Source: Macrostomum lignano (taxonomy: Eukaryota). Taken from it: a stretch of 64,000 nucleotides of DNA. Below are positions 23,466-64,000 of this stretch, piece after piece. Position 1 is the stretch's first letter. Each line of letters starts with the position of its first letter. Where the stretch lies: the NCBI GenBank assembly GCA_002269645.1, contig NIVC01000251.1, positions 310,001 through 374,000 on the forward strand. The letters are read 5' to 3'. The position numbers and the translations under genes were made by a program. The notes beneath the pieces were generated by a model, which was not told the DNA's origin, searched no databases, and saw only the letters and a program-made list of their open reading frames with translations.

Positions 23466-24299
23466 AATGCCAGGATCTTTGGGGGTTATATAGTGTTTTT
23501 TTTGCCATACATACTACTTACAGCAGAGTAGCAATGTGTCTCACTAAGCAACCAGCTAAATAATGTAAAAAGTTGGAAAAGCAAGTATTCGAAACTCGTT
23601 GGGTGATTAAACATCAAAGTTATGGGCTATGATAATTTAGCGGTTATACGTAAAGGTCGGCTATATTTTATTTAGGCATGCTGACCTCGAAGCAGCTAAG
23701 AACTGATAAACAGAAAAAGGTTGGATCGTTACAAAAAGCGATTATGTGCGTTACAAAATTTATCGGAAAATATAAACTATTAGAAAAATTATTATCATGT
23801 CGCTACATACTACTTATATACGCAAGAAAAATATTATGAGAAAGATTGTGTTTGTTAAACTTTTCGGATAAAAATGCATTGTTTTATAACTTTTATTAAA
23901 TATTATTGCACTAATTATTACACATAAATTATGACTCCATATTGGAAGGTTGGAAAGTTTACTGGTAAAAACATAAGTTAATTTAAACGAAAAATCGCAA
24001 GCACCTTACTAAGAAATATTTCAGCTAATAAATGCCTTACAAACTAAATACATTTTGACTCCTAAAAAGTAGGATTATTAAATTATAGAAAAATAAAATT
24101 AATTTGACACACTTCATTGAATAACTACGAAACAATGACTATTATTAATAGCACAACAACAGATTTAATGAAAAAAGCAAAAAATAAGCGAAATATAAAA
24201 GACTAACCTTAAGTCCTCGACTTGCAGCAGCTGTTTAAAAAATAACCAATGACCTGTCTGCTTCACTTTAGATTTTAATAACATAGACTCATTACATAG

Positions 24300-25580
24300 T
24301 CCTCAGATAACCTTGACCCACTGACCTGCTTGACCTCAGATAACCTTGACCTACCAACCTGCTTGACCTTAAATAACCTTGACCTTCCAACCTGCTTGAA
24401 CTCAGATAAACTTGATCTTCCAACTTGCTTGACCTCAGATAACCCTGACCTTCCAACCTGCTTGACCTCAGATAACCTTGACCTTCCAACCTGCTTGAAC
24501 TCAGATAACCTTGACCTTCCAACCTGCTTGAACTCAGATAAACTTGATCTTCCAACTTGCTTGACCTCAGATAAACCTGACCTACCAACCTGCTTGACCT
24601 CAGATAACCTTGACCCACTGACCTGCTTGACCTCAGATAACCTTGACCTTCTAACCTGCTTGACCTCAGATAACCTTGACCTTCCAACCTGCTTGACCTT
24701 AGATGATAACCGTGACCTACCAACCTGCTTGACCTTAAATAACCTTGACCTTCCAACCTGCTTGAACTCAGATAAACTTGATCTTCCAACTTGCTTGACC
24801 TCAGATAACCCTGACCTTCCAACCTGCTTGACCTCAGATAACCTTGACCTTCCAACCTGCTTGACCTTAGATAACCTTGACCTTCCAACCTGCTTGACCT
24901 TAGATAACCTTGACCTTCCAACCTGCTTGACCTTAGATAACCTTGACCTTCCAACCTGCTTGACCTCAGATAACCTTGACCTTCCAACCTGCTTGACCTC
25001 AGATAACCTTGACCTTCCAACCTGCTTGACCTTAGATAACCTTGACCTTCCAACCTGCTTGACCTCAGATAACCCTGACCTTCCAACCTGCTTGACCTCA
25101 GATAACCTTGACCTTCCAACCTGCTTGACCTTAGATGATAACCGTGACCTACCAACCTGCTTGACCTTAGATAACCTTGACCTTCCAACCTGCTTGACCT
25201 TAGATAACCTTGACCTTCCAACCTGCTTGACCTCAGATAACCTTGACCTTCCAACCTGCTTGACCTTAGATGATAACCGTGACCTACCAACCTACTTGAC
25301 CTCAGATAACCTTGACCTTCCAACCTGCTTGACCTTAGATAACCTTGACCTTCCAACCAGCTTGACCTCAGATAACCTTGACCTTCCAACCTGCTTGACC
25401 TTAGATGATAACCGAGACCTACCAACCTACTTGACCTCAGATAACCTTGACCTTCCAACCTGCTTGACCTTAGATAACCTTGACCTTCCAACCTGCTTGA
25501 CCTTAGATAACCTTGACCTTCCAACCTTCTTGACCTTAGATAACCTTGACCTACCAACCTGCTTGACCTCAGATAACCTT
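24300..25580. repeat. 33-bp minisatellite (TGACCTCAGATAACCTTGACCTTCCAACCTGCT)n
   Basis: Tandem units, some 36-bp variants; lies about 200 bp beyond the plk1 stop. Confidence 0.97.
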
Positions 25581-25778
25581 GTCCTATTAGACCCTGTTGA
25601 CCCTGACATGAGAATCGACATAAAAAACAAAAATAGGTCAAATCGACAAAGGTAAATTAACTCGTATTGCAGAAAAACAGATTTTGAAATTGTTTAGCAG
25701 TCAAGAGAGAAAATACGAATAAGAAATCAAGCGCTCAAGTCGTCTAATTGTCGCACTGGAGTTGATAAAGTACACTCA

Positions 25779-28555: not shown

Positions 28556-28605
<50 letters not shown>

Positions 28606-28642
28606 GGGAGCTTCTGTGTGTCCCTGTCTGTCTGTCTGCCTC

Positions 28643-28695
<53 letters not shown>

Positions 28696-30329
28696 TTGTC
28701 TGTCTGGGGAGCTTCTGTGTGTCCCTGTCTGTATGTAAAAATATTAAAAACTCATAATATATTAGTCTGACCTTAAAATTATTATTCTTAATCCGAACGT
28801 AGGTCTCCTTGAGCGAAGGCGATTCAAATGGCGGCCTGCCTACAACTAGGGTGTAGAGAATGCAGCCCAGAGACCAGACGTCCACCTCAAAGCTGTGACC
28901 CTGCTTGTTAAGCACCTCCGGGGCCAGGTAATTAGGCGTGCCGCACATTGTCTTCTTCTGTTCGCCGTCTCTGTTGACCTGCGTAGCCAGGCCAAAGTCG
29001 CCGATTTTCACCTGGATTGGGATATTTTTAACAGGTTAGCGACTGCCGAAAAAAACTGTTTTCAGACGCCAGTAAATCTCTCCAACCTATTTCTAATCCT
29101 ATTTTTCTAACACTGGTTCCACTACGGCAACCTTATCCCCTTCACAATCAATCCATCATTAACTTATTACGTAATCAAAAAATACTTCTTTAACACCGAC
29201 TCTACCTCTCAACCTACTTTCCCAACACCAACTCTACCTCTCAACCTACTTTCCCAACACCGACTCTACCTCTTAACCTACTTCCCGAACAGACTCTACC
29301 TCAACCTACTTTTTAAACGGACTCTACCTTTCAACCTACTTTTTCAACACTGACTCTACCTCCTCAAACTACTTTTCCTAACACTTACTCTATCTCTCAA
29401 CCTACTTTCCCAACACTAAAAATCTACCTGTCAACCTTCTTCCCTAACACTTACTCCCTTCTTCTCCAACACTGGCCCTACTACTCAACCTTCTTCACAT
29501 AACACATACTTTACCTCTCAACCTACTTTCCCAACAAAAAGTCTACCTCTTAACCTACTTTTTAACACTGACAACACTGACCCTACTTCTCAACCTACTT
29601 TTTAAACACTGATCCTACTACTCAACCTACTTCCCCTAACACTTACTTTACCTCTTAACCTACTTCTCTAAAATATAAAACCTACAACATAACCTACTTT
29701 TCTCAAGCAACAGCACTGCATCACAATTTACTTTTCTACCATCTGAATATATACTCCTAACGCAACTTTCAATATTTCAACTTACTCACCCATAGTTTAG
29801 AATTGAGAAACACGTTTCCCAGTTTGAGATCGCGGTGAATAATCTTGTTGCTATGCAGATACTGGCAGCCGCTGACAATCTGTCTCATAAAGTACTGAGC
29901 CTCAGGCACAGTGACCAGCTTTCGCCTACGATGCAGCTCCATCAGGGAACGCCTTGAGCACAGCTCCAACAAGATGTACATGTTTTCCTGATCGGCAAAA
30001 CTATCGTAGAACTTCACCAAATGTTCGTGCGACAATTTCCGATGAATCTCGATCTCCTGAATCATCTTCTCTTTCTGCGAGTCTTTAACTAGAAGCTTTT
30101 TGGACACGATCTTGCAAGCCAGGGTGCGGCAGTCGCTAGCATCTGAGCTAGTCACCTCGTAGCAGAAAGCGAAACCGCCTTTGCCAAGAAATTTGCCGCA
30201 ATTGTAAGAAATTCTACTTTGTGAGTTCACAATCACGGCCGGAATTGTGGGATTCTTAGCCCGCTGTGCTGCTGCGGCATCCGCATTAGCCGGTACTGCC
30301 TTTGATGTGATTGGCATTGCTGCTTTCAT
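25779..30329 (-). CDS. plk1: Polo-like kinase 1, 5 exons, about 639 aa
   Basis: Exons 30329-29790, 29011-28772, 28331-27861, 27255-26833, 26024-25779; all introns GT-AG, phase 0, all exon lengths multiples of 3. Motifs: [43 protein letters not shown]-box-like RQAL, polo box 1 [19 protein letters not shown], polo box 2 [11 protein letters not shown] (His/Lys pincer). Confidence 0.97.
26125..26790. repeat. 24-bp minisatellite (ACTAACTGAGTCACTGAATGTGTC)n in plk1 intron 4
   Basis: Tandem units, most containing TGAGTCA. Confidence 0.96.
27340..27765. repeat. About 19-20-bp minisatellite (ATCTTCACAAATCCCCCAT)n in plk1 intron 3
   Basis: Tandem units visible. Confidence 0.92.
28505..28735. repeat. 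(TCTG)n-based compound repeat in plk1 intron 2
   Basis: Direct observation. Confidence 0.92.
29195..29700. repeat. Degenerate about 30-bp repeat (ACTCTACCTCTCAACCTACTTTCCCAAC) in plk1 intron 1
   Basis: Recurrent CTCAACCTACTT core. Confidence 0.85.
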
Positions 30330-40432: not shown

Positions 40433-42557
40433 TCATTTAGGATTTAGGAATTTGTGCTTGAGCAGCTCCGACGTGTCTGCTCGCTTCTTCGGATCCCTCA
40501 CAATGCACCTTAGATAAAACTCCTTGAGGCCAACCGAGAAATTCCCTTCAATTTGAGGCATCTCCCTTTTCTTGTCGACCATCACTAAGGGAATTCGAAA
40601 ACCGGGCACGCTGGAATTCGGAGGCTTCATGTGCGTCATCTCGAACACAGTGCAGCCGAACGCCCACACGTCAGTCTTGATGGAGTAAGGGATCGATGTT
40701 CCGTCTTCGTCCATGAACAGCTCGGGAGCCATGAAGTGCCAGGTGCCTTTTGCCTGATTGCCGGTCGTAAGGCCGCAGGTGCCCATAAATTCCTTGGCTA
40801 GACCGAAGTCAATTAGCTTGATGACGCCATCGTGGGTGAGCATGATGTTGGAACACTTTATGTCCCTGTGCAGGATAGGTCCCTGCGGCTGACAATGCAG
40901 GAAATTAAGACCGCTGCAAATCTGCAATGTTAATATGGGCATCAAATGATCAATTGGAGTAGCGAATTTTAAGTTCACATTCAGCGAATTTGAAATTTAC
41001 CTGTCTTGAGAAATCCATCACGCCTGACTCTTCAATTGGTTTCTCGTTCTGTTTCATCAGATCAAGGAGGCTGAGGCCGGAGATGAGCTCAGTGAAGATG
41101 CAGAAACCGTCGGATGTGACTTCACACTTGAGGAACAGTACAATGTTGGGATGCTTGACTGTCTTGAGTATCTCGATGCCTCTCTGCTCCAGCTTTAATT
41201 CGTTCTTCTCTCTCCAGGCGTCGCCGCTAACTGGAATAACCTTGACGGCCACGGTCTGGTACCGGTCAGTGAGGGCTTTGAAGACTTTGCTGAAACCGCC
41301 CGCGCCTAAGAGCTGCGGTTTGTCGTCCTGTTTCACGAAGCTCCAGGAAGTGAATCCCGGATCCAGCGGCTTTGAGACTCTGTGAATTATCAATAATATT
41401 TTATACTAAAGAGACTAAAGAGAATTATGCAACAGTGTTAGGCCGATTCCTTTGGTTCCTGAGCACGGCACATTTGCACAAAGGGTATACAGAAGTTCTT
41501 ACTGTGCATTGTATTACATGTACAAGCCCCGGACCCTACTTGGAGATTGTTTATTAACCTAACAACGAGTAGCATCAAACTAAACTCACAAGCTTGGCGA
41601 GCTTTCAAATGTGTTGGTATCACCTAGCGTTTGGGAAGCTGGTGGCTCCGGCTTCGGTTTAACGACAGGTTGCGGAGGCGTCGGTTGAGCAGCTGGTAGC
41701 TCAAACCTTGGTTTAACAGCTGGTTTTGGAGGCGTCGGTTGAGTAGCTGATGACTCAAACCTTGGTTGAACGGCTGGTTGCGGAGGCAATGTTTGAGCAG
41801 CTGGTGGCTCAAACCTTGGTTTCACGGCTGGTTGCGGAGGCAACGTTTGAGCAGCTGGTGGCTGGTCAGCAGGTGGCGGCGTGGGCAACGGACGGGCAGC
41901 GAGCTGCGGAGGCTGAAGCAGAGAAGCTCCCGGCTGCCACTTTTGGCTGGCAATCCACTCCCGCTTACTGCTCTTCCATGGATTATTGCTGCCCTTCTCC
42001 ACCCAGTCAATCAGTGTTTCACCTTTGTTATTTCTTAAGCTGAACATCTCGGAGCCGAGGTGACTAGCAAGAAACTGAAGCGACTCCACCGGCTGCAGCA
42101 TCGCGGCCCAATGGACGGCTGTGTTACCTTCATCGTCAGGAATTGTGAGGCAGTCAGTGCCAAGCCTCTCAACTAGCCACCGGAGCGATGCATTCGTTTT
42201 GGTATTCTTAGCAGCAAAATGAGCCGCTTTATTTCCCAACACTTCAAAGAAATTGAGGCCGAGAAATTCTCTGGAGAACTCCAACCACGAGTCGTCTTTG
42301 AACCATGCCATCAGATGAATGGGAGTCCAACCGTTGCTGTTCCTGCAGGTCAGACAGCTCTCTCCAAGTTTTTCTGTCAGCGCCTTGAGGCACTCCAGGC
42401 TAACTGACCATCTGGCTACGTGATGGCTCACTGACTGCTTCAATCCGCGATATTTGAACTCAATGTTGCTATCGAGTCGAGCGCACAGTCGCTCCAGTTC
42501 CCTGCTGTTTTCAACTTCAAACGCTGCTCTTATCTTTCGTTTGGTAAAGTAGCTCAT
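40433..42557 (-). CDS. Gene A: ankyrin repeats, Pro-rich repeat linker, MAP3K/STE11-like Ser/Thr kinase; about 611 aa, true 5' end uncertain
   Basis: Exons 42557-41590, 41379-41001, 40921-40433; introns phase 2 (TT|GTGAGT...CACAG|A) and phase 0. ANK motifs GWTPIHL, GNTAVHW, GETLID. Kinase motifs [41 protein letters not shown] 42557 chosen by alignment with gene C. Confidence 0.9.
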
Positions 42558-45500
42558 TGCGTTGACTCCACTGTTTACAGCTAGTTGGTTTAGTTTGAGG
42601 TTTAGCGTTACTTCAAAAAACTCTGAATTATGTATATAAGCTTCTTCTGTAGCAATACGGATGCTATACATCGAACCTGCTGCTGTAAATGTCTCTCCTA
42701 CTGCACTGAGCACTGTACACTTGTGAGCAAGCAGGGCAGGCAATGCGAGCGCTTCTGTATGTCGTTTCCGAGGTTCTATTCAACCTGAGATGAAAAAACA
42801 GAGACGAAATTTGATAGAGAGAGAAGAAAGTAGCTCGTAAAAAATACATTCCATTGTTTTTTTCGAGACAGAGACTCTGCAACCTTCTTGCGCTCTGGTT
42901 GCTTAACGTAAACATCACTTGCTCGACAAGAGTTTTTTTAGCCTTTTCGAGCTACAAATGTGTTTAGAAAAACTGAAGGCATTATAGAAAGAGCGAATGG
43001 TTTTCATATCAGAGTTTGCCTACAAAAATATCTTTGATGGCTGCAGCTACATGTATCTGCAGTTATATAGAGTCTGTTACAGAGCCTACTACAGAAACTG
43101 CTACAGAGTATTTTAACAGTCTGAAAGAGCTCCTTCAGCTGTGACTATTTCTGTATCTGGCTTAATCAGAGGATAATCGAACATACTTTTAACATAATCG
43201 AAGACACTTCTACTTAAAATAAGGATGTGATTTTGGTTTTAAGGTTATATAACCTAAATTTAGATTTTCTCATCAGAGAAAATTTCCCTGTCCCCATGAC
43301 GTTTACCTCCATGACCTCTGTCCTCATGACCCCCTTCCCCATGACCTCTGTCTCTATGACCCGTTTCACATGACTCCTACCCCGATGATCTCTGTCCTCG
43401 TGACCCTTTTCCTTATGACCTCTGTCCCGGTAACAATAGATTTCAAATAATAAAAATTCTTAATTATCTGAGCTGCTGCAGATGCAGTTCTCAAGACGAC
43501 AGCACAGCTCTGCAACAATCAGCTCTGGCGTGAGCGCATCCGACTGTTCACACGCAGCCCATTCTCACCATTTCTGCAGCATGAGTTTTCATTCATTTCA
43601 CAATGTCTCAAAAAGCACTCCCAGTTCTCCATCGGCAGCTCAAGCCACACAATCTCACTGCACACCGAGGCCCTACAGCTTCCATTCTCAACTGAAATCA
43701 ACCGGCACCCCATTGGATAGGAGACAGCCAGCCAATCACAGCTCAGCCAGAGACAAGCACAGCTGACTTGACTCTGATTGGCTGGTCTGAGACTGCAGCT
43801 CTCAGGCCACCAGCATAAAGACGGTCCAACGAGCTGTCTCAGCACTGGTGACGTATTAAGCCTGGCCTAAGCCTCACCTTGGATGACGTGCTGGGCGAGA
43901 GTCTGGAGTGAAAGGCTGCTGAGTCTCTCCGACGCTTGTCCGGTAGTTGTGGTCGGGCCGAATGAATTCCTGCAACTGCAATTCAGACACTCAAGCTTTT
44001 TGTTCGCAACATACTACTGTTGCGCTTAAATGCAGCAGTAGCACCTGCAAAAATTATTTAAGTGGCAAAAGGTATTAAGTAAAGAAATTGATCGTTGTTC
44101 AGCAGTAGACAATTTTGAAACGTCAATATGAACCCTCGAGATAAGTTTGCCGACACAGACATACTTACCCAAGGTGCACTGCCCTGAGAATGAGTACACT
44201 CCTATGCCTTCTTTAGAAACTTCCTGGGGAGCCGTGAAACTGAAACACCCTGCAAGAAGTTTATCACAATAAATAGCTACTTGATCCAACCTAAACAGCA
44301 GACTTCTGAGTATTGTTCTCTAGCTGCTCAGGTGTCATCATGTGCGCCCTCGATTAAATTTATGAGTATCCTTTGGTAAGGAAAGCTTAAATAAAGCTGG
44401 ACTCTTTTTTATGGCTTGTGGCCACATGCCGGTATGTTGATGTGTCAGCAGCATATAGTACTCAGTGTCCCCATGCAAATCACAAGATGTGATCTGTCAG
44501 CAGCATTAACGTCCGTGATTTTCTAACCCCACTGGACAAGCAGGTTATTATACAAATGCTGGCAATAGAAAATTGCTTCGAGTTGAATTTAACTCTACAC
44601 GATGCTAATTGAACACACCATAGTGCTTAGGATGCATCCACGCCAACCAAACTCGAACAGAGCTCCATCAGGTGCACACTGATATTTCGATCCGCCACGC
44701 TCTGAAGGCCTCGTCCACCGAAATCTGAATTCTATACGGGATTTTTCGGGAAGTTTCTGTAATTCTCAGGATCTCTCTACTCCATTCAGTCTCGTAGCTT
44801 TGAGTCCTGTAACAGCGTGTCGAAATCTGTGATTGTTTCTATTGATTTTCAAACTCGCGCGCACTCGTCATTCATTGAAGGTTTCGACCGTAGAAGTTAA
44901 TAATTGAATTTCCAAATTCATGTATGGAGGGGAGTTTGTTTTTATTGAAAGTTCCGCAAGTTTTAAGATTTTTCGGTGCATAGAAAGTGTTAGTTTGTTT
45001 AAATCAAGGACTTCTTAAAACGCAGGACGTTACAATCGCGAATTTTTTAAAGTTGGGGGTAAAATGGAGTAGTAAATCAGGCTTGTAGTTTTACGAGCTA
45101 TTATTCAGCAACAAACAAAAATGTTCACCCTCTTTTTGGAAGAATTTCGTCCCTCAGTTGAGTGACGACAAAATCAATTCAACAGTTCGACCTCAGACTA
45201 ATGGTCAATGGGTAGTTGAAGGGTGGGACGCTTGCTGAGAACAAGTCCATTGGACAAGAGAGTCTATGTTTGAGGAAGAAGCGATTTCAGAACAGTCTAT
45301 TCACATGTTAGTTCACAAAATTCTGCCGAGAATAGAGTAGACATTTAGTCTGTTGCTGAGTATATATATACATTTCCCTTGTTCCTTATATATGTCTGTC
45401 TAGTCTTACTATGGTCATAATGGAACTCTATGGTCATAATAGCTCGTAGGCATGAGTTTCCGCGGGCAAAACTGACTGCAGTTTTGGCAAATTGGAAATC

Positions 45501-45831
45501 CCTGCAAAACAGAGAATTAGAAGATATAAGGTATAGTCTAACACATAACTTACGTGGTACAACTTTACAGTCTTGAAAAACTGAAATAAAATCGATGGCA
45601 AAAAAATTATGAGCGAACAACCAACCAAGACAACAAGGAAAGAAAATCTAGCACCAGTACAAAAATATTGAGTTGAGCAAAAAATTCTCAGCTGAAACTG
45701 TTAAATCATCAGGGCTCTCAAATCTGCTCCTAAAAATTGGTCTAATGAAGTTGACAGCAACTGAATTTGAATAGATTACGAGCTAGATCTAACATCTAAG
45801 ATAAATCCGAATTTTGACCGGGTAAAATTTA

Positions 45832-50725
<4,894 letters not shown>

Positions 50726-51053
50726 GGCAATGAGGATATGAAACTTGCATGGTCTAACCACATTGTAAAAAAGAGCAAATACAGTTTAGAAGGATGGATA
50801 TGATATTAGCCTCGTGGATAAATGATGGTTTGTGAATTCTACGCTTGGAGTTCCGTCCGTAGAAAGGAATTTTTTTAGAATTTGTTTAGAAAAACATTAT
50901 CATGGCCATTCGGAAACAAAAGGTTATTGACACATTTTGTATTTTTAGGAGATTATCAGATGTTTTAAATCACAACTGGTGTAATACTCGCGTATGAAAC
51001 CAATAAAATTCAAGTTCTTCCTCTGTAGGAAACCAATCAAAATCAATGAGGAG

Positions 51054-52912
51054 TCATTTTCTGTCGCCAAACAGTCCACCAAACTTTCTCTTTGAACTTT
51101 GCAACCTCTGATTAGTCAGGAACTCGTGCTTCATCAGCTCCTGGGCTGGCAATCTCTTCTTGCATTTGTTGGCGGTGCATCGGCGGTAGAAATCCTTCAG
51201 CTCTGCTGAGCAGCCTTCAGGCAGAGCGGGTGCTCCACTGCTTCTCAGTCGCTCCGGCAGAGTCCAGCTGTTCTTGTGCTCAGCAAAAGGCCGCCCACCA
51301 GTGGCCATCTGGAAGACTGAGCAGCCGAACGCCCAGATGTCCGACTCTCGACTGTACTTTGGAGTGTCGGAATCGTTTGGAGCGAGCAACTCCGGTGCCA
51401 TGAAGCTTAAAGTGCCTTTGGGCGAAGCAGAGGACGCTGAGATGTGACTGACTGACTGCTCCAATGTGACTGACAAGCCAAAGTCGATTAGTTTAATGAG
51501 CATTGTGTTCGTCAGTACAATGATGTTGGCACAGTTGAGATCTCTGTGGATTACAGATGGATCTCGGCTGTGCATGTAGCTCAGGGCGTTGCAGATCTGC
51601 AATCATAGAAATTACAGATTATTTAAGTTTATTGCAGTAATCAGATTGTGTCAGAAGTACTTTTTAGAAGTACCTGCTTGCTGAAATCTCGTATTTTGTT
51701 TTCATCCAGCGCTGTCTTATTGATAAAAGCTTCCAAGGTTTTTCCGTCCAGCAGCTCCATGAACACAACGACTGTGGCGGGCTCCGTCTTAGCAATGTAC
51801 AAGAACTTGACAATGTTGTCATGTTGCAGTTGACACAGGTTCTTCTCTCTTGAAACCACTTTTTCGATCGCATTGCTCACCAAGCCCTGTTCTGCACCGA
51901 GCTGCAGTGGCAGTCTGAGTGTCTTAGCAGCGCACGTGACGCCTCTGTCAGTGTGCACTTTGTGAACTTCGCCGAAGCCTCCCCTTCCGATGAGGCGAAC
52001 TGGATCCCAGCGCTCCCGAAATGGGCATCTATGATGGGGTTGAGACAATAAATTACGAATGAATAAGTATAAAACATGAACAAAAGGCAGCGCTTTTTAC
52101 TCGATAATGACAACTGCAGAGAGTTGGGCGGCGAGCGACTGAGCTCCCTGCGGCTGCTGACGCAGTTGGGCAGCGAGTGGCTGAGCTCCCTGCGGCTGCT
52201 GACGCAGTTGGATGGCGAGCGACTGAGCTCCCTGCGGCTGCTGACGCAGTTGGGTGGCGAGCGACTGAGCTCCCTGCGGCTGCTGACGCCCGGCAATCCA
52301 GGCCTGCTTGCTCTCTCTTCTGCTTGTGTTGGTGTCTTTCTCAATCCAGTCAATAACTGTTTCGTCCTCGCAGTTCTTTAGCTCAAAAATCTCCCATCCA
52401 AATTTGGCCAACAAGAACCTTAACGTATTTAGTGACTGATACCTGGCAGAATAATGAATGGCCGAGTTGCCGCGTCTGTCAGTGGCGACAAAGAACTCCT
52501 TGCCAAGCTCCGTTGCTATCCACCTTAGCGACGAGCTCGATTCTATGTTCGATTCGTTTGTAGCGGCATAGTGAACCACTGTCCCACCCGAGTTCGCTTG
52601 CAACAAGAAGCACTCGTTGCCTAAAATGTTTCGGCAAAGCTCCATCCACGATTCGTTCTTATACCTCGCCGCTAAGTGCACAGGAGTTTCTCCTGTACTG
52701 TTTCTGCAAGCCAGACATTCATCTCCGAATTTGTCTACCAGTTTTCTGAGGCAGAGCAGATCAACAGGATGACTGGCCACGTGATGCGCTAATGAAGCAT
52801 TCAGCGAGTATACCTGGAATTCGACGTTGCTATCGAGTGAATCGTATAAACTTAGCAATTCGTCGCTATCTTTCGCCACCAACGCCGATCGGAGCTTTGC
52901 TTCAATTTGCAT
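51054..52912 (-). CDS. Gene C: ankyrin repeats, Q-rich repeat linker, MAP3K-like kinase; about 569 aa
   Basis: Exons 52912-52101, 52028-51674, 51596-51054; introns phase 2 (GA|GTAAAA...CATAG|A, 72 bp) and phase 0. ANK motifs GETPVHL, GGTVVHY, GNSAIHY. Kinase motifs GRGGFG, CAAK, HRDLNCAN, IDFG, GTLSFMAPE. Confidence 0.9.
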
Positions 52913-54119: not shown

Positions 54120-55655
54120 TCAACTTTTTCTACCAAATATAGGGACGTCGTTGCGCGGACATCCGAGAGGCAAGAAAAATCGCGTGGTTTTCGTACTTGA
54201 ACGAACGTTACTGGCACGCAATCGAGTGCTACTAGGATCTAATGTAATACAAAATACTCGTACGCTCGAGGTACGTCCCAATGTGTGACTTACCGCTGGA
54301 AATGTGCACGTAGGCATTTCGCTGTCCGAATGGTAGCCAGCTTCTTCATTTCTGTCAGCTGGAGCCTCGACGCCAGAGCTCTTTCTGTTGATGGCAGGAT
54401 TGACTGCTACGGCCGCCGCTGTAGCCATCCTGACTGGATGACGGGTAGCATATACAGCTCTCCCATCCCTTCGGTTGTTGCCAAGCAGGCGGAGACTCAA
54501 ATGCTGGGCAGAGACACGAGTTCGACGTTGCAAATCGAACAGGGTTCGCGTCGAATTGCGTCTGACCGCCCTGAGCCGACAGGCGTAAAGCAGTGGGTTC
54601 AAAAGTGTGTACGCGACCATGAGCAGCTCCAGGTAGTGGTCCAGCCTCTCGTGCTTCATCAAACTGTCCAATAGACTCTCGAGTTGGCGCCTGTTTTGAG
54701 CATGCAAGAAGTTGGTGGCAAACTGGGCGATGAAGAATGGCAGGAAGAGAGCGTAGAACTGTAGCAGGATGGCGATTGCAGTGAGCACTCCTCGTTTATT
54801 GTGCCGCTGCAGGCTCAGCGCTCGGTTGCTCCTGTTAAGCCGCATCACCCGGTAGATGGTGGCGATGATGCGGCTGTAGCAGAAGGTCACCGTGGCGCAG
54901 GAGGCAACAAACACCCCCAGGACAATCTGCAGGCTGTTGAAATTCACAGCGCTTCTACCGACACAGCAGAAGGCGGTGTTGAAACCGGCTTCAATTTCTT
55001 TACGGCAAATTCTGCGCAAGCTGAACAACTCTTCGTCATCTTGAACAGTTGAATTTGTATTGTCAGCGCTTGTCAGGCGCAATGTCAGGTAGCTGTGGTA
55101 TAGGACAGGCAGAAGACCCAACACGGCGGAGACAGCCCAGCTACCAACTAACAATCCACGCATGTACCGAACAATAAAAGCGGTTCGATAGGACAGAGCT
55201 CGATTAACGAATAGGTATAGATCGACAGCAATCAGGGTCAGAGTGAACAGAGTGACACTATGCGAAGATCGAAGGCTTTCTTGAGTCAGGTAGCTCAGGC
55301 AGAAACCTTGAGGTTGCTGCGAGACTTCAGAGGTTGCATTGAGGGACAGTTCCTGTGGGCTGGAAATATTACTAGACAGTCGAATTTTTATCGGGATGTA
55401 CTTTAAATCAACTCCTAGGCGACTGCTTTCCATGTGCTGCTTGAAGCTTAGGTCCGATATGACCAGCACAGCGGTGACAGCGTCCGTTAGAAGCAGGTGT
55501 CTTATCAACAGAAGATTGTAGATGGAGGCGCTGCTGACACAGCGAATGCCGCGCAACACGTAGAAGATCCAGGCGTTCAACAGGACGCTCAGGCTGCACA
55601 CTGCGAAAGAAGCGTGGCCTAAGATCTCGGGTTCCGAAGCAGTTGAAGCAGACAT
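54120..55655 (-). CDS. Intronless orphan class A (rhodopsin-like) GPCR, 511 aa
   Basis: Seven hydrophobic segments; TM1 N, TM2 LxxxD (LLLTD), TM3 Cys and IAVDLY, TM4 W, TM6 FLPF, TM7 NPLLY; long C-tail. Confidence 0.92.
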   Translation of the reverse strand: MSASTASEPEILGHASFAVCSLSVLLNAWIFYVLRGIRCVSSASIYNLLLIRHLLLTDAVTAVLVISDLSFKQHMESSRLGVDLKYIPIKIRLSSNISSPQELSLNATSEVSQQPQGFCLSYLTQESLRSSHSVTLFTLTLIAVDLYLFVNRALSYRTAFIVRYMRGLLVGSWAVSAVLGLLPVLYHSYLTLRLTSADNTNSTVQDDEELFSLRRICRKEIEAGFNTAFCCVGRSAVNFNSLQIVLGVFVASCATVTFCYSRIIATIYRVMRLNRSNRALSLQRHNKRGVLTAIAILLQFYALFLPFFIAQFATNFLHAQNRRQLESLLDSLMKHERLDHYLELLMVAYTLLNPLLYACRLRAVRRNSTRTLFDLQRRTRVSAQHLSLRLLGNNRRDGRAVYATRHPVRMATAAAVAVNPAINRKSSGVEAPADRNEEAGYHSDSEMPTCTFPAVSHTLGRTSSVRVFCITLDPSSTRLRASNVRSSTKTTRFFLPLGCPRNDVPIFGRKS

Positions 55656-57481: not shown

Positions 57482-57911
57482 GGAGCCCTCTCCCCCTTGT
57501 TTCCGTCAAGGAGTCTTCCTTCTGTTCAACCTCGAGTTCTACGTCCGCGTGTGACTAAGTCCCGAGTGTCCGAGTCTTTGCGCACATTGATTCTGTTCCT
57601 ATTGCTCCGACTGAGACCCGACCAAACCAATCCAAGTCTACGAGAGGCTAACTCAGCCCTCCCTGTACCATCCAAGCCCGGCAGGTGCTGCTGACGAGAC
57701 GCCTTATACGTTGAGCTGCAAATCTGCACGTCGTGCTGTGTTCGTTGACTTCATTATTTCGTTCCGACGGGAAGCTCACCTCACCGAAGGCCGAGACCTG
57801 AAGGAACTGGTGGCAGCACTACCTACGCTACTAAAGTTAAGAAGGCTTCTAAGTGAGAGGACGGAGCCCAAGTCACTGCGCTGTACAGCAGGACAACCAC
57901 AGGTACAACAC

Positions 57912-57931
57912 TGGTGACGCAGCGGTGGGAT
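57912..57931 (+). other. Primer-binding site, tRNA-Leu-like with a 2-nt insertion
   Basis: TGGTGACGCAGCGGTGGGAT versus TGGTGGCAGCGGTGGGAT, the recalled complement of the eukaryotic tRNA-Leu 3' end; one base after LTR-terminal CA. Confidence 0.7.
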
Positions 57932-58002
57932 CCGACTACGACACACCCAAGCCAACCGCTCTTTCGAGAACGACATCGGCCAGTAACTACTACGAGTTCA
58001 AC

Positions 58003-59175
58003 ATGTTCAACGAACGAGACGAGAGCCGGTGCAGCAGCCGGCTGGATCAGCACATCAGCAGCTCGAGGCCTGCGGCCACGGACGCCGCAGCAGCAGCAGC
58101 GATCAACGACTTTGGTCAGCAGCCAACGCCGAGGCAAGGTGCCAGAAGCGACGTGTCCGACGACCCGCCAGACGAGCTTCTGCCAGGCCTGGACAACAGC
58201 GGCCGGAACATCACGCACCAAGACGTCAGGACCATGATGGCAGCTCTGCAGCAGCAGATGGAGCGGCCTGTAAGTAAACAAGTTAAAATTGTGAAGTTTA
58301 CTCCAAGTCAGGACATTCACGTCTGGCTTGCCGCGTTCGAGCAGCGTTGCGAGATGGAGCGCATCGTCGACCCGTTCGAGATGAAGCAACACCTCATCGC
58401 GAGTCTTGATTTGGCTACTGCGTATCCTTCCTTGCTTGGTATGAATCTTCCGCGTTTCGCCAGCTACGAGGAGGTCAAGCAGCGTCTTATTGAGCGATTT
58501 GCCCGTCATGGTGGTGCTGATGAGTATCGAGAACTGTTGCGACGTCGTCAACAAGGCAAGAATGAGTCAGCAGAAGAGTTCGCTGACGCCCTGAGAACTC
58601 TGGGTGAACGTGCATATCCTCGAATGCATCCTGAAGACCGCGAGAAGGAGATTACTGATTAATTTCTTGCTGGTATCCGGACGACTCCAGATCTGCGCGA
58701 ACGGCTGTACTGGGTTCGCCCGAACAATCTTCTTGCTGCGATTCGAGAGCTACGACGACTAGAAGGCGCCAAAGAATTGGCGCACCGATCTGCTCAACCC
58801 CCGGTTAGGATGTTGGACGGGGAGGAGGACGGCGACCCGAAGCCCGACGTCACCGCCCAAGCCTTGCTGACTCTAACCGACTTGATTGAGAAACAGCAGC
58901 GAATGCTTGATCACCTGGTGCAGCGTGACCAACAGCAGGTAGCCAGTCCGCCAAAGAGAGCGATAATCTGCTATAGCTGCGGACAGCCCGGTCATCGCAA
59001 CACCCAGTGCCCGATACGCCAGAACCAGGGAAACGGCCAGGCGGAGAGCGACAACGGCACCGCCCTCCGCGAGGTCCAAGCCCAGGCTACTTGGCAGACT
59101 CCGAGAGGTCACCAGAAGAAGAGGATGTCGGCTGTGCAGGCGCCAATGCCCAGTCCGACAGTCGCTCGTCAGTAA
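58003..59175 (+). pseudogene. gag: gag with CCHC zinc knuckle, interrupted by one in-frame TAA
   Basis: ATG 58003; capsid-like WLAAFEQRC...QGKNESAEEFADAL; TAA at 58660-58662 within EITD*FLAGI; same frame continues to CYSCGQPGHRNTQC (58969-59010) and stop 59175. Confidence 0.88.
59028..59034 (+). other. -1 ribosomal frameshift slippery site G GGA AAC
   Basis: X XXY YYZ heptamer in gag phase just after the zinc knuckle; the -1 frame is open from here into protease. Confidence 0.8.
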
Positions 59176-62100
59176 GTGACGCGGAGTGTGGAGGTTTCGT
59201 GGACACCTCCCTGAATCAAAAAATCCATGCGCGTGAGGCCGATCCGTACGTCACAGGTCGAGTTGCGAGTCGAGAAGTCCCTTTCTTGCTAGACAGCGGC
59301 AGCCGGAAAAACTTCCTCGGTTCGTCAACCTGGGCCGCTATTAGACGCCGGATGCCTCGTTGTATTATATCGCATGCTATTCCCGATTGCGTAACTATGT
59401 ATGACGGGACGCAGCTCCCGCTTGCTTGTAAGGTGACCATCCCGGTGGAGTTCGGTGATGTCGTCGCGGACACCGAATTCCTCGTTACGGTCTCCGATTG
59501 TGAAAATTTACTTGGCGTATCATTTATGCGAGAGCACTGCCAGAACTTGGACTTCGCTCAAGGAATGTTGAAGTTTAACAATGGCGCGTGCATCCCCGTT
59601 CGCTATTCACGTCGTGAGCTTCAGAACTGCCGAGTGTACACCTCCGAGAAGTGCACCCTGCCGCCTAGAAGTTCAGCGCTGCTTGCCGTCAGACTGGATG
59701 ACGGCCACCCTGAGAATCGAGGATCGCCATCAATTGTCGAGCTGGTTAAGTCGAGGCTGCATCCCAGCTGCAACGCTCTGGAAGCAGCGCCTGCTCTGAT
59801 GACGATGCCTGAAGGTCGCGGCTACATTGAGGTCGTCAACACCGCCGACAGCGAGGTGTTCCTGCAAGCCGGTATCCGTGTTGGCGTTGCGACGCCACTC
59901 CGAACTGCCGACCTGATGTACTTGAGCGAGACGCCCGAACCTGAAGTGCGACACCTCCCGAAGAACTCTGAAGAGTCCAGCACAGCATGGCTAGATGAAG
60001 TCGAGATCAACAGCGAATTGTCCAAAGAACAACATCAAAGAGTGCGAGATCTACTAGTTGAATGTCAAGCGGCCTTCTCCAAGCACTCGCTAGACGCCGG
60101 CCTGACTCACCTGGTGACCCACGAGATCATCTTGAAGGACCGGACACCAGTCGCGCTACCACCGCGCCGAATCCCGCCTCATCTGAAGGACAAACTCGAC
60201 GCCCTGCTAGACGAGATGCTGGCGAAGCACATCATTCGCCCTGCCTACTCGAGCTACAATTCGCCAATGCTCATCGTGCCCAAGAAGGACGGCAACATCC
60301 GACTAGTCCACGACTTCAGAGCTCTCAATGACAGGTGTGTGTATCACCCGTATCCGCTCCCGCACATCCAGGAAACCTTCGCGAAGCTTCGTGGTGCTCA
60401 GTGGTATTCTAGCTTGGACCTTGCTCAAGGATTCTGGCAGATCCCGCTGCGCGACTGCGACCAGCACTTGACGGCATTCTCAGTAATCGACCGCGGCCAA
60501 TTCTGTTTCAACGTTCTACCGATGGGTCTCCACGATAGTCCCGGCAGCTTTCAGCGTTGCATCAATAAGCTCCTGGACGGCCTGACGCCAAAGACTGCGC
60601 TTGGCTACATGGACGACATCGTGGTGCACTCAGTGACTTTCGAGGAACAGCTGGATAACTTGCGAACTGTACTCCAGCGCATCATCGCAGCCAACCTCAA
60701 AGTGAAACCGAAGAAGTGTCATTTGTTCCTCAAGGAGCTGCATTATTTAGGTCACGTCGTGACTCCCGACGGCCTGAAGACCTGTGAGGACAAGATTGCG
60801 CAGATCCGTGATTGGCCCGTGCCACAGTCCGTTACTCAACTGAGACAATTCCTAGGCCTCGCCAATTACTACCACAAGTTTGTCGACGGCTACGCTGGAG
60901 TGGCTGCGCCGCTGCATGCCCTGACGCGAAAGGACATTGGCAGCTTGCGGCAGCATTGGACTCCTGAGCATCAGTTAGCGTTCGACACTTTGAAGAAGAA
61001 ATTGTGTTCTACTGAAGTTCTCGCTCTGCCTGAATTTAATTCTGATCCTGCTGTGAAGTTTGTCCTCGACACGGATGCCTCTGATATTCGAATAGGCGCT
61101 TGCCTTGGACAACTGCAATCCGACGGCGTCGAACGTCCAATTGCATTCTTTAGCCGTAAACTTCGCGATCCTGAGAAGCGCTACACGGTCACGAAAAAAG
61201 AGCTGCTTGCAATTGTGGACGCTATGCGACATTTCCGTCATTATTTAATTGGCAAGAAGTTTGAAGTTCGATCCGATCATCGGGCCTTACTGTGGTTACT
61301 GAACCAGACTCAGGCCACAGGTATTTTAGGCCGCTGGATCGAACGCCTAAGCGAGTTCCGCTTCCAGCTCAACCACCGCAAAGGCAAGGACCACGCCAAC
61401 GCTGATGCCCTGTCAAGAAGACCGGAGGCGCCGCCGATCTCCTTCGAGCATGGCCGACTGCTAGAGCAACCTGGTTCTACAGCCCGACCCGGTGACGACC
61501 ACGACCTGGAACCGGATTTGGACCCGACACCCGAGGCCACTGCCAAAGCAGCCCTCCAGAAGACAGTCCACTCTCGCTGCTTGGAGGCCAAGACTGACCT
61601 GGACGAAGACCTGGAAGCCACCGCGCCAGCAGCCTTCCAGCACGACGCCCACCGCTGCAGTCAACGCCTGGAGACCGGCCTGGACGACAACTCAGAGGCC
61701 ACTGCGACAACAGCCCTCTGCCGCGATGCCCATGCCGCCTACCGCAACTTGGAGACCAACCTGGACGAAGTCCTAGAGGCCACCGCTGACGCAGACCTCC
61801 TTGACAACGCCCAAGACTTCCGGTCTCGGAATCTGGAGACGCCCACGGACCAAGATTCAAAGGCCACCGCGCCAGCAGCCCTTCTGATGACGGCCCGCCA
61901 CGCAACTCCAGGCAAGCAATTTAACTACAACCCTTCCGAGCCTTTCGCTGAGATTTCTCGCCGTGTTGACAGAGGCCAGAATCTCGCGCCAGCTGCAAGG
62001 TCGAAGCTCTGTCCCCCGGGCCGACAGACAGCTGCTCATCGCCTGTGCGGAAAGTCGAGTCCCCCTTTGCGACACCGCCCAGTGCTGGAGAAGACTCACC

Positions 62101-64000
62101 CAATTTTGACGACGACTGAGCCGACGGCTACGGCTGCTCGCGACGAGGCGTGCTTCACGTGTTGCGTCCCGCCCTACAGCCAAGAGTCGCCTGTGCTATG
62201 CAGTGGAGGCATGCGCGCTGCTCCATCTGCGGAATCTTCTGTCATGAGAGCGATAAAGAGAACTTCGATTCGAGATCAACGGACGTACGCCGACGTTGTG
62301 AGACAAAGTCCCTCGGAGCGACCTAATCCTGACGCCGACAAGACGGTGCCGTGTGATCGACCTGGAGCCATTAAAGCGGAGACTGCGGGAATCCGGACCC
62401 CTCAGCCATGCCGCGCCGTGCTCTCTGATTTTCTGAAGCTGCCGATGACTCGCCAACAGTTCGTTGACGCCCAACGCGCTGACCGAGCCATCAGCTATGT
62501 GCTCAACCTGGTCAAGGACGAAGCCCCGAAGCCTGAGTTCGACGCCCGGTTGCGCCTGACGAAGGAGCAGCGGAATCTGCTCGGATACTACGAGAACCTG
62601 CAGGAGGACAACGGCCTGCTGCTGATTGACCTGTCCGATGGCCAGCAGCCGCCAAAGGTTGTTCTGCCTGAGGCCCTTGACGCCCAGGTGCTCCAGGAGC
62701 TCCACAGTTCGCCACTGTGTGGACACCTCGGCGAGACGAAGACGTTACTGCGGCTACGAGAACGGTTCTGGAGACCCGGATTAGCCCGTGCTACCAAGAC
62801 CTTCATCAGTAAGTGCCGCACTTGCCTTGAAAGTAAATCGCGACGGCGAGAGAGAGTTCCGGTCCAGAGCTTCCCAGTTTGCGAAGTTCTGGGTAGAATC
62901 CACTGTGATGTAGTAGGACCAATCGCGCAGAAGAGCAAGAGCGGTAACCGCTACATCCTGACCTTGTGCGATGCGACGTCGAAGTATCCATTCGCCTACC
63001 CGATGAGAAACCAGAAAGCCAAAACAGTCATCAAGCTTCTGCAGGAGCGCTTCATCCCTGAGTTCGGTGTACCATGCTGGATCCACACCGACCAAGGCAC
63101 CAACTTCACCGGCTCGGCCTTCAAGAAGTTCTGCGACCTGTTTGGCATTCGGCATACGACAACAACACCGTACAATCCAGCTTCCAATGGACAAGTCGAG
63201 AACCTCAACAAGCAGCTGAAGAGTGTCCTCACCTGTCTGCTCGAGCGCAACCACAACGACTGGGACACCTTCCTCCCGGCCTGTCTGATGGCTCTCCGCT
63301 CCAGCGTGCACCCGGTGACCGGCTTCACGCCTCACTACCTGGTGTTCGGCCGTGACTTCCGACTCCCGATCGACAACGCGCTGAAGAAGCTGCCCGAGTA
63401 CGCCGACCTGCCCGACTACGTCAAGGACTTCCAACGTCGCCTGGACGAGGCGACTGAGCTAGCCAAGGAGCGCCTGCATCTGCACCAGCAACTGCGAGAC
63501 GAGCACTATTCGAACCTGCCCGCCGCCAAGAAGCTTCAACCCGGTGATCTGGTCTTCCTCAACAATCCGGTGCTTGAACCGGACGAGGCGGCGAAATTTC
63601 ATCGACCTCGCAAAGCGCTGTACGAAGTCGTCGAGCCCAAGGGCGAGGTCGTCTACAAGATTCGACGGAGACTGCCCAACCCGAGAGCCAGACGAGACGA
63701 ACTAGTCGTCCATCGCCGGAACCTTCTGCTCGTGCCTGACGCTGACTACACGAGAACTTCGGACCCTGAAGTCGACAAACCGAAGAAACGCCGGCGGCCG
63801 CCTGACGTCCCCGACGGCGCAGGACCAGGGACCCTGACGCCAATCCCCGAGGACGACCAGGACGACCCCGACGATGACGATGATGACGGCTACGACGCAA
63901 GGCCGGCCTTCCGATGGCACTTCCGGCCTGTGGCGATCCCGGAGGTGCAGCCAGGAGGTGGACCGGTCACGACACCAGCGAACCAGGCAAGTGCACTTCG
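59028..64000 (+). CDS. pol: pol polyprotein (PR-RT-RNaseH-IN), uninterrupted to the window end
   Basis: Hand translation found no stop. FLLDSG protease (59283), LDLAQGFWQ and YMDD RT (about 60606), DTDAS and NADALSR RNaseH, HSSPLCGH...CRTC zinc finger, IHCDVVGP, HTDQG, NGQVE integrase triad. Confidence 0.95.

Follow-up and report, generated by a model that had tools for sequence, protein, structure and literature searches.

Three neighbouring genes of Macrostomum lignano, here called A, B, and C, are probably old and divergent members of a Macrostomum-restricted superfamily of ankyrin-repeat (ANK) kinases, in which kinase cassettes are exchanged between genes and the proteins would act as sensors coupled to an output. 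All three lie on the minus strand of the analyzed window of 64,000 nucleotides, and their exon boundaries were read straight off the sequence. They are predicted to comprise 3, 6, and 3 exons, respectively, with unbroken ORFs, canonical GT-AG sites, and matching phases (Table 1). The original prediction that the genes end in a common two-exon kinase module was borne out by the intron phases and junctions: the 3'-terminal module consists of a phase-2 intron, an N-lobe exon, a phase-0 intron situated after DFS(K/R)Q, and a C-lobe exon that begins with IC. The N-lobe exon is 355 nt long in both B and C, also as predicted, and 379 nt long in A. The intron separating the two lobes measures 79 nt in gene A, 444 nt in gene B, and 77 nt in gene C. 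In all three genes the cassette stands at the 3' end and closes with a stop codon.

Table 1. Features of the gene A, B, and C cluster; positions are those of the window.
Feature	Position	Strand	Description
Gene A exon 1	41590..42557	-	degenerate ankyrin array of the alpha class (N-cap, one double repeat, C-cap); Pro-rich linker
Gene A linker minisatellite	41637..41863	-	54 bp x 4.2; encodes 18-aa repeats
Gene A kinase N-lobe exon	41001..41379	-	379 nt; phase-2 acceptor; phase-0 donor after DFSRQ/GT; kinase clade I
Gene A kinase C-lobe exon	40433..40921	-	starts ICSGL; stop codon included
Beta-class (canonical ANK) relic	43454..44823	-	upstream region and exon 1; in-frame stops, internal deletion
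(TATC)170 microsatellite	49859..50537	.	~680 bp; directly upstream of the first recognisable exon of gene B
Gene B candidate Gly-loop/beta3 Lys exon of N-terminal TK/TKL-like kinase	49736..49841	-	GRGAFAKCW...FVPK; donor fits next exon (phase 2); acceptor phase 1
Gene B exon, N-lobe/hinge of N-terminal kinase	49322..49499	-	VKKRLAKEVETMGEL...RLRME; identical to model P0045 from MGELSQ on
Gene B exon, catalytic loop of N-terminal kinase	49089..49241	-	HRDLAADN; supported by P0045
Gene B large exon	47389..49004	-	N-terminal kinase DFG and C-lobe, helical-repeat region, three canonical ankyrin repeats; phase-2 donor GG/GTGAGT; confirmed by P0045 from 49004 onwards
Gene B C-terminal kinase N-lobe exon	46813..47167	-	355 nt; ends DFSKQ/GT; clade II
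Gene B C-terminal kinase C-lobe exon	45832..46368	-	starts ICSAL; HRDINCSN, DFG, APE; stop codon included
Gene C exon 1	52101..52912	-	alpha-class ankyrin array and Gln-rich linker; phase-2 donor GA/GTAAAA
Gene C linker minisatellite	52122..52289	-	42 bp x 4.0; encodes 14-aa QLRQQPQGAQSLAx repeats
Gene C kinase N-lobe exon	51674..52028	-	355 nt; ends DFSKQ/GT; clade II, early-branching
Gene C kinase C-lobe exon	51054..51596	-	starts ICNAL; HRDLNCAN, DFG, APE; stop codon included

The ORF of gene A is open upstream to 42779, and the Met chosen as its start matches the starts of the paralogues in the alignment. The first intron of gene A is in phase 2 and 210 nt long. The linker repeats of genes A and C are not related to each other. 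The DNA at 43.4-44.8 kb matches beta-class loci and was considered as a fourth intact member between A and B, but the protein-level comparison ruled this out: exon 1 is decayed and contains stops, and kinase exons are missing downstream. As this dead copy of the beta class sits between B and A, the cluster shows birth-and-death turnover. The kinase-like matches at 28.8-30.3 kb belong to a Polo-like kinase gene that is not related to the trio.

Gene B reaches upstream of 48965 and carries a further, N-terminal TK/TKL-like kinase domain (PF07714, 95 bits, profile positions 7-256) that was overlooked in the original prediction. It is 100% identical to the partial M. lignano UniRef model P0045, which confirms three of its exons. 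The candidate Gly-loop exon is not confirmed by P0045, and no upstream exon partner was found for it. An ORF further upstream (50725-50573, MAIIFRVEYDPEKL...) was considered as the 5' exon of gene B; it ends in a phase-2 GT donor and cannot be joined, because the Gly-loop exon needs a phase-1 partner. The microsatellite may be either intronic or interrupt the 5' end of the gene. As gene B combines a TK/TKL-like kinase, helical repeats, three canonical ANK repeats, and a clade II cassette, it is predicted to encode a dual-kinase protein. The homologue search with its N-terminal region returned only gene B's own copies and generic TKL kinases, mostly from plants. In the AlphaFold2 prediction of P0045, run with its two paralogues, the mean pLDDT was 38.6, and values of 60-82 were reached only at residues 330-450, which form helix pairs.

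In the Pfam searches, both Pkinase and Ank families were over threshold in genes A, B, and C. The C-terminal kinases scored 168-178 bits (cut-off 31.7) and covered profile positions 2-263 (PF00069/PF07714), and Ank_2 or Ank_4 was above its cut-off in all three pre-kinase regions, with 37-40 bits in A, 38 bits in C, and 60 bits in B. Repeats of the alpha class are degenerate, and their matches to the Ank profiles are weak. Neither the trio nor nine other members of the family gave a Pfam match to NACHT or NB-ARC. The G-loop, beta3 Lys, HRD, DFG, and APE motifs can be read from the translations of all three C-terminal kinases, as GRGGFG, CAAK, HRDINCSN, DFG, and APE in gene B and as GRGGFG, CAAK, HRDLNCAN, DFG, and APE in gene C. 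Since Asn stands in place of the catalytic-loop Lys in the clade II kinases (HRDxNCxN), their catalytic activity is only assumed. The best solved structures for the gene C kinase were ASK1/MAP3K5, MAP3K2, and WNK1 (about E 1e-26), closely followed by TLK2, SLK, PAK1, and DAPK2 (E 1e-25 to 1e-21). None of the 59 structure matches was to a TKL ANK-kinase (ILK, TNNI3K, or RIPK4/ANKK1).

On the evidence of homologue searches and trees, A, B, and C are members of a large, lineage-specific ANK-kinase superfamily restricted to Macrostomum. With gene C as the query, 47 M. lignano relatives were found. Conserved one-to-one orthologues across phyla had been named as contrary evidence, and outside Macrostomum the same query returned only generic kinases with an identity of 33% or less. 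In the full HMMER scan the top single-domain matches bearing a name were all from M. lignano and came from many separate 50%-identity clusters, and the first named non-Macrostomum match appeared at ~254 bits. Some high-scoring matches from outside Macrostomum (a bird protein, an oomycete kinase, and an ENA protein) were rejected as orthologues, as their scores come from several kinase domains per protein. Nearly all members tested contain ANK repeats and a kinase, with a caspase added in some (see also PMC11463336). The intron positions and phases of the cassette are kept in loci L001-L005 wherever a protein model shows the junction (P0003, P0002, P0017, P0009, and P0012). No description of the superfamily, its cassette structure, or the exchange was found in full-text searches of the literature.

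Neighbour-joining trees were built from 200-281 columns. In the kinase tree the superfamily was separated from the outgroup kinases with 100% bootstrap and divided into two deep clades, also with 100%. Gene A grouped with clade I (93%), while B and C fell in clade II, where B is nested nearer the crown than C. The N-terminal regions belong to at least three classes, alpha, beta (the canonical ANK), and gamma, and for gamma no relatives were found besides its own copies. The usual partner of a clade I kinase is an alpha-class array, as in gene A, and gene C joins an alpha-class array to a clade II kinase. The alpha-cap tree, which is weakly resolved, grouped A with C at a bootstrap of only 67%. 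On this basis gene C is a possible chimera.

The BLASTP comparisons between modules reproduced the similarities from which the original prediction had started. The pre-kinase region of C resembled that of A (39% over 265 aa, E 2e-59), with 39-42% identity between the two ankyrin arrays across comparisons, and the pre-kinase region of B had no significant match to either. The kinase of C was about two-thirds identical to that of B (66% over 297 aa, E 3e-145), and the kinases of A-B and A-C shared 37% and 35%. Taken with the common intron positions, these similarities are far beyond chance and reflect homology. The claim of recent modular recombination held only in part: cassettes do move within the family, but for the trio the word recent could not be kept, and judged by the divergence given below the module swap among A, B, and C is old.

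The movement of cassettes can be seen at the P0003 locus, L001. Over a stretch that starts upstream of the ATG and runs into intron 1, L001 shares 92-93% identity with L002 and L004, which have alpha arrays and clade I kinases, and this identity resumes ~190 bp beyond their stop codon. The stretch in between is 93% identical to L005, a canonical-ANK gene of clade II. According to this alignment, a clade II cassette has taken the place of a clade I cassette here, and the breakpoints lie within intron 1 and the 3' flank. Because the tract spans the intron and the 3' flank and the clade changes, we consider the event a cassette replacement and not a homogenisation of an existing homologue; it provides a clean, breakpoint-mapped case of exon-cassette replacement in an animal genome. 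Two UniRef-only models, P0010 and P0029, have a chimeric junction of the same kind. In L003, three tandem cassettes are spliced in frame, with a phase-2 donor just before the stop codon leading to the next phase-2 acceptor, and the junction reads ...EFFIV-S-PVFRDSW in P0002 and P0001. With the same intron phase at its two ends, the cassette can be inserted into a gene, or several copies joined, without loss of the reading frame. At the level of sequence, the ANK-kinase family thus demonstrably swaps its kinase cassette between genes.

In the explanation we favour, A, B, and C would be three old and divergent cytosolic ANK-repeat kinases, and every member examined would end in one ancestral two-exon cassette with a STE/MAP3K-like kinase. 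The cluster would have arisen by tandem duplication, and gene B would have obtained its cassette through at least one ancient event of fusion or exchange. As in the paralogue described above, cassettes would be replaced through recombination events located in intron 1 and the 3' flank. A recent construction of C (or B) in place, by recombination between the neighbours A and B, would also account for the discordant module similarities and for the pairing of A with C in the cap tree while their kinases lie in different clades, and exchanges of exactly this type occurred recently elsewhere in the family (L001). It is nevertheless very unlikely given the divergence. The kinases of B and C differ by a dS of 0.74, and their DNA could be aligned only over the two exons (75-78%), with unalignable introns and flanks. 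The kinase of B is nearer to paralogues on other contigs (76-80% aa identity, dS 0.35-0.42) than to that of C, and by raw identity the array of A is nearer to the clade I crown arrays (46-49%) than to the array of C (42%). In addition, a C-like and a B-like exon are joined in the paralogous model P0037, and therefore the C-B neighbourhood should be older than a later duplication.

It could also be that no shuffling took place within the trio, A and C having co-diverged from one alpha-array kinase ancestor and B owing its chimeric appearance to gene conversion of the kinase exons with clade II genes. The likeness of A and C indeed needs no chimera, because their arrays and kinases are about equally diverged, and the kinases of the clade II crown are so alike (dS 0.08-0.17) that concerted evolution is compatible with them. 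However, the whole pre-kinase region of B is without a homologue among the family members, so a fusion must at some point have joined it to the family cassette. Co-divergence would predict a split of {C, P0004} from the clade I arrays, which had a bootstrap of 5.6%, and the tract in L001 includes the intron and 3' flank and changes the clade. We therefore hold this scenario to be unlikely. Improbable, too, is a scenario in which the patterns reflect neutral turnover, with the three genes being duplicates that have lost their function and are decaying in repeat-rich surroundings. This would agree with the dead relic between B and A, the minisatellites within the linkers, the (TATC)170 array adjoining the first recognisable exon of B, an omega of 0.3-0.5 that is high for kinases, and the lack of predicted proteins for A and C in the database searched. 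The GenBank gene models of M. lignano are, however, based on RNA-seq transcripts and leave out those overlapping repeats (PMC5730564), so that the missing models are weak evidence. Against decay stand the unbroken exons with their GT-AG sites and matching phases, the intact kinase motifs, and the B-C omega of 0.31, which at the dS given above indicates long-term purifying selection. Nor can decay focus a dN of 0.6-1.0 on three codons per repeat at a dS of ~0.05-0.08, as was observed in the arrays.

These values come from young clade I paralogues, the arrays of A and C being short, with about one double repeat. For the whole ANK exon of these paralogues omega was 1.0-1.6, as compared to 0.3-0.5 for the kinases, and the entropy was limited to three of the 35 positions of each repeat, namely 3, 4, and 14, which correspond to the canonical ANK binding surface. 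Relative to the dS of all codons, dN at these positions gave ratios of 19 and 7, and 0.65 for the scaffold, with the hypervariable sites picked from the same data that were tested and the compared repeat pairs not being independent. The dN/dS comparison of ANK surfaces suggested by the original prediction, run on these paralogues, supports its interpretation. The number of repeats varies between the family copies.

Under the reading we prefer, the ankyrin array would bind variable ligands via the hypervariable residues on its binding surface and control the attached kinase, giving a receptor that combines sensor and output, similar to those that serve immunity or nonself recognition. Such a reading of the proteins is plausible; an immune-type role would be one among several that could fit binding arrays evolving this fast. 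Large size, lineage-specificity, and strong diversifying selection on a binding surface mark families of recognition receptors such as the fungal NLRs, to which the variable repeat number, the kinase and caspase outputs, and the module exchange can be added. To our knowledge, many of the canonical innate-immune receptors are missing from flatworms, and there is little information on flatworm recognition systems. The superfamily might, rather tentatively, be an unrecognised flatworm repertoire of cytosolic receptors for immunity or allorecognition, in which a DARPin-like variable ANK sensor is combined with a MAP3K-like kinase output, with or without a caspase, and new pairings arise by symmetric-phase cassette exchange. 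If so, animals would have an equivalent of the diversification of fungal NLRs, with a kinase in place of the NOD module. As transgenesis is feasible in the laboratory with M. lignano (PMC5730564), the receptor idea is directly testable.

Dyrka et al. 2014 (PMC4986451) described NLR (STAND) proteins of fungi whose ANK, TPR, or WD repeats are highly conserved. Like them, the ANK-kinase family has near-identical repeats within one protein, repeat numbers that vary from copy to copy, positive selection confined to few binding-surface positions, and sensor and effector domains variously combined between close paralogues. Internally conserved repeats are rare in metazoans (0.8%; PMC4986451). Unlike in the fungal NLRs, neither NACHT nor NB-ARC was detected, a protein kinase, in some members together with a caspase, forms the output, and the host is an animal; the likeness thus lies in evolutionary mode and not in membership.

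Ankyrin repeats and a kinase are likewise found in one cytosolic polypeptide in ILK and TNNI3K, whose ANK-then-kinase order is that of genes A and C, and in RIPK4/ANKK1 and DAPK1, where the kinase comes first. The structure matches of the gene C kinase, from which ILK, TNNI3K, and RIPK4/ANKK1 are absent, are led by ASK1/MAP3K5, MAP3K2, and WNK1, with DAPK2 and DAPK-related protein 1 among the lower ones (E 5e-21). The animal ANK-plus-kinase proteins are also conserved single-copy genes, while the M. lignano family is a lineage-specific expansion with hypervariable arrays. A further likeness is that a death-pathway protease is added in some of the M. lignano relatives. An M. lignano ANK-kinase caspase has been handled as a single odd caspase (PMC11463336); it resembles P0026, P0039, and P0145, which combine canonical ANK repeats, the family kinase, and a caspase domain, unlike genes A, B, and C, which have no caspase domain.

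The arrays also resemble DARPins in that the repeat scaffold is invariant and the diversity sits in the beta turn before G-x-T and at the residue following the AA motif. These sites match positions 2, 3, and 13, at which the 2003 DARPin library of Binz et al. was reportedly diversified. Unlike DARPins, the M. lignano arrays are natural, and their degenerate 35-aa repeats are of two alternating types, with the second helix and the loop off consensus.

Direct reading of the junctions placed the three neighbouring ANK-kinase genes A, B and C on the minus strand with canonical GT-AG introns. As the original prediction had proposed, each ends in the same two-exon kinase cassette: a phase-2 intron lies ahead of the N-lobe exon, which is 355 nt in both B and C, a phase-0 intron follows ...DFS(K/R)Q, and the final exon begins IC. 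In each gene Pfam detected ankyrin repeats and a complete protein kinase domain, and the kinase motifs and ANK-kinase architecture are intact. The similarities between modules that had been judged by eye were reproduced by BLASTP. The pre-kinase regions of A and C share 39% identity over 265 aa (E 2e-59), that of B has no significant match to A or C, and the kinases of B and C, estimated as two-thirds identical, share 66% over 297 aa (E 3e-145), as against 37% for A-B and 35% for A-C. An in-frame minisatellite lies in the linker of A and another, unrelated in sequence, in that of C.

Features of genes A, B and C in the window, and segments of the related M. lignano locus L001
Feature	Position	Strand	Size or match	Remark
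Genes A, B and C together	40433-52912	-		three genes
Gene A exon 1	42557-41590	-		junctions read from sequence
Gene A N-lobe exon	41379-41001	-	379 nt	junctions read from sequence
Gene A C-lobe exon	40921-40433	-		junctions read from sequence
Gene B candidate exon	49841-49736	-		first recognisable exon; phase-1 acceptor
Gene B exon	49499-49322	-		part of N-terminal kinase
Gene B exon	49241-49089	-		part of N-terminal kinase
Gene B large exon	49004 onwards, end 47389	-		junctions read from sequence
Gene B N-lobe exon (C-terminal kinase)	47167-46813	-	355 nt	junctions read from sequence
Gene B C-lobe exon (C-terminal kinase)	46368-45832	-		junctions read from sequence
Gene C exon 1	52912-52101	-		junctions read from sequence
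Gene C N-lobe exon	52028-51674	-	355 nt	junctions read from sequence
Gene C C-lobe exon	51596-51054	-		junctions read from sequence
L001 segment	9500/9785-11613		L002, L004, 92-93%	upstream region, ANK exon, 5' part of intron 1
L001 segment	to about 11985		L002, L004, 80-86%	further intron 1
L001 segment	12059-13469		L005, 93%	3' part of intron 1, both kinase exons, intron 2
L001 segment	13970-15135		L005 3' flank, 76-95%	3' flank of clade II gene
L001 segment	15550 onward		L002, L004, 92-95%	starts ~190 bp past L002/L004 stop codons

With gene C as query, 47 M. lignano proteins were found, and beyond these only generic kinases of at most 33% identity. In a full HMMER scan with a kinase profile, M. 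lignano accounted for all top single-domain matches bearing a name, which were spread over numerous 50%-identity clusters (two Logan entries are unnamed); the first named match from elsewhere was a snail RSK-like protein at ~254 bits. Conserved one-to-one orthologues across phyla, named beforehand as evidence against shuffling, were not seen in the database searches, and full-text literature searches did not find the family itself described. Nine more distant members were analyzed with Pfam: ankyrin arrays accompany a kinase in eight, a pair of kinases occurs in one, and kinase, ANK and caspase domains occur together in one; a published caspase protein resembles the caspase-bearing members (PMC11463336). 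Family members are often clustered. Locus L005 carries two on the same strand, 6.7 kb apart (14882-15819 and 21552-22525), and a single contig carries the genes for protein models P0009 and P0012, separated by 68 kb.

A neighbour-joining tree of 44 family kinase domains and four outgroup kinases (281 columns, 100 bootstraps) resolved two clades, each with 100% bootstrap. Clade I comprises A, P0025 and a tight crown of young paralogues (P0008, 9, 11, 12, 13, 20, 30, 32); clade II has many members, among them the early-branching C, P0004, and B, which nests with the crown group at 93%. The pre-kinase regions sort into at least three unrelated classes. The alpha class is found in A, C, all clade I members and a few clade II members, and is a degenerate ankyrin array in which a variable count of 70-aa double repeats stands between an N-cap and a C-cap. 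The beta class has canonical ankyrin repeats and is paired only with clade II kinases, and the gamma class is the gene B type.

The claim that A, B and C had recombined recently did not hold. The B and C kinases differ by a dS of 0.74 and a dN of 0.23, and in DNA alignments of the two genes only the two kinase exons align (75-78%), with introns and flanks giving no alignment. Against crown clade II kinases on other contigs, the gene B kinase has a dS of 0.35-0.42, and those kinases differ among themselves by 0.08-0.17. A and C have diverged to a similar degree throughout (identity 42% in the array caps, 39% in the whole pre-kinase region and 35% in the kinase), so common ancestry would suffice to explain their resemblance. 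Together, these values argue for an old trio. An array-cap tree paired A with C (67% bootstrap), and in it the kinase-tree split of C and P0004 from the clade I arrays received just 5.6%. The array and kinase histories are thus incongruent, but the resolution is too weak for calling C chimeric. In P0037, a paralogous copy, a C-like N-terminal stretch (first 29 residues, 96.5% identical to the end of the gene C N-lobe exon) is spliced onto a B-like exon; a C-like gene would thus lie upstream of a B-like gene there as well, and we infer that the C-B neighbourhood predates the P0037 duplication.

The only firm discordance in the window is gene B itself, which extends upstream of 48965, past the predicted model. 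Its exons there, including the candidate first exon, jointly code for a second, N-terminal kinase domain (95 bits against PF07714, nearly the entire profile covered) with the motifs GRGAFA, FVPK, HRDLAADN and DFG. The best solved relatives of this domain are EGFR, JAK, the plant receptor kinases SOBIR1 and BAK1, and Nek2 (E 1e-10 to 1e-16). The domain is separated from three canonical ankyrin repeats by a helical-repeat region, of which AlphaFold2 resolved residues 330-450 alone (pLDDT 60-82; overall 38.6). The reading frame is unbroken over six exons, and gene B is predicted to encode a protein with two kinases and a length of at least 980 residues. It is 100% identical to the M. lignano UniRef model P0045, which confirms the splicing of cassette intron 1 and of the three exons from 49499 downstream. 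In a homologue search, the gamma-class region had no relatives besides gene B's own copies, P0047 (93%) and P0037. The joining of this unique N-terminal protein to a family cassette requires that a fusion took place at some time. A (TATC)170 microsatellite (49859-50537, 96% purity) abuts the first recognisable exon, and may be intronic or may have cut off the 5' end of the gene. The sole ORF upstream was rejected as a 5' exon, its phase being incompatible with the phase-1 acceptor.

Elsewhere in the family, however, cassette exchange has occurred, and recently. P0003, encoded at L001, has an alpha array 85% identical to the clade I crown arrays, yet a clade II kinase. We compared L001 with two alpha/clade I loci, L002 (P0009) and L004 (P0012), and with the beta/clade II locus L005 (P0017). 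In this comparison no clade I kinase exons were left at L001, where the whole cassette has been replaced between a breakpoint in intron 1 (11985-12059) and a second one in the 3' flank. Mis-assembly is an unlikely source of the mosaic, since the UniRef-only models P0010 and P0029 have a chimeric junction of the same kind and GenBank models of M. lignano derive from RNA-seq transcripts (PMC5730564). At L003 (20125-23674), a single canonical ANK region is followed by three kinase cassettes in tandem, the final two separated by 1306 bp. These two look almost identical in their N-lobe exons, in intron 2 and at the beginning of the C-lobe exon. The cassettes are joined in frame via a phase-2 donor just 5' of the stop, giving the two- and three-kinase proteins P0002 and P0001; in this respect the cassette acts as a symmetric-phase module. 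In gene C and in each of the six clade II cassettes examined at L001, L003 and L005, intron 2 has a length of 77 nt.

The proposed dN/dS analysis of the ANK surfaces was run on clade I paralogues of A, the arrays of A and C themselves being short. In young paralogues, omega was 1.0-1.6 for the ankyrin exon and 0.3-0.5 for the kinases; the arrays are under diversifying change and the kinases under purifying selection. Across ten proteins (23 type-a and 24 type-b unique repeats), the aligned repeats are nearly invariant save two residues preceding G-x-T and one following an AA motif. At these three codons dN was 0.6-1.0, compared with a dS of ~0.05-0.08 over all codons, with ratios of 19 and 7 (scaffold 0.65), values to be read with the sites chosen from the same data and the repeat pairs not independent. 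Aligned to the ankyrin consensus, the variable positions correspond to the beta turn and first helix, where the ANK binding surface is formed, and are also the ones randomised in DARPin libraries. High internal repeat conservation, repeat-number variation, concave-surface selection and combinatorial domain architectures are also combined in fungal NLRs, and such internally conserved repeats are stated to be rare in metazoans (PMC4986451).

A sensor-output reading of the family is reasonable. The ankyrin array would bind variable ligands and thereby regulate the attached STE/MAP3K-like kinase, whose best solved relatives are ASK1, MAP3K2 and WNK1, and cassette exchange would pair sensors anew with outputs. 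The caspase links and the mode of evolution point to a possible role in immunity or nonself recognition; other roles may apply, such as reproduction, which is fast-evolving in the genus Macrostomum. A fast-evolving repeat sensor coupled to a signalling output is a kind of system already known; the interest of this family is that it is apparently undescribed and testable in a laboratory model. In the clade II kinases (45832-46368, 51054-51596, and L001, L003 and L005), Asn replaces the catalytic-loop Lys (HRDxNCxN; HRDINCSN or HRDLNCAN versus HRDIKCSN in gene A and clade I). Because the substitution is kept under purifying selection, it may be a sign of regulated or pseudo-kinase behaviour or of a changed mechanism, and clade II activity is putative.

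Between B and A, 43454-44823 (-) is a pseudogenised remnant of a beta-class member. What can be recognised of it is the upstream region and exon 1 (70-84% DNA identity to L003 and L005), with in-frame stops, an internal deletion and no kinase exons downstream. Exons of an unrelated Polo-like kinase gene (N-terminal kinase and polo-box-like exon, with a minisatellite in one intron) lie at 26791-30329 (-). The single-exon ORF at 54120-55655 (-), 511 aa long and 1.2 kb upstream of gene C, resembles a multi-pass membrane protein such as a rhodopsin-type GPCR, with NPLLY towards the end of the helical region. The G+C-rich block (56-60%) at 57800-63900 contains retroelement-like ORFs, one of which (58777-59175, +) has a CCHC zinc knuckle, CYSCGQPGHRNTQC; it is probably an LTR retrotransposon, a type abundant in the M. 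lignano genome. Long ORFs with many hydrophobic segments at 33-1946 (+) and 16347-18510 (+) are probably exons of membrane or transporter-like proteins. Tandem repeats make up about one-fifth of the first 27 kb, and long minisatellite arrays (4300-5200, 8100-8500, 9700-11500, 13300-13800, 16900-17950, 18800-20500, 22500-23500, 24300-25650 and 26050-26650) yield spurious repetitive ORFs on both strands.
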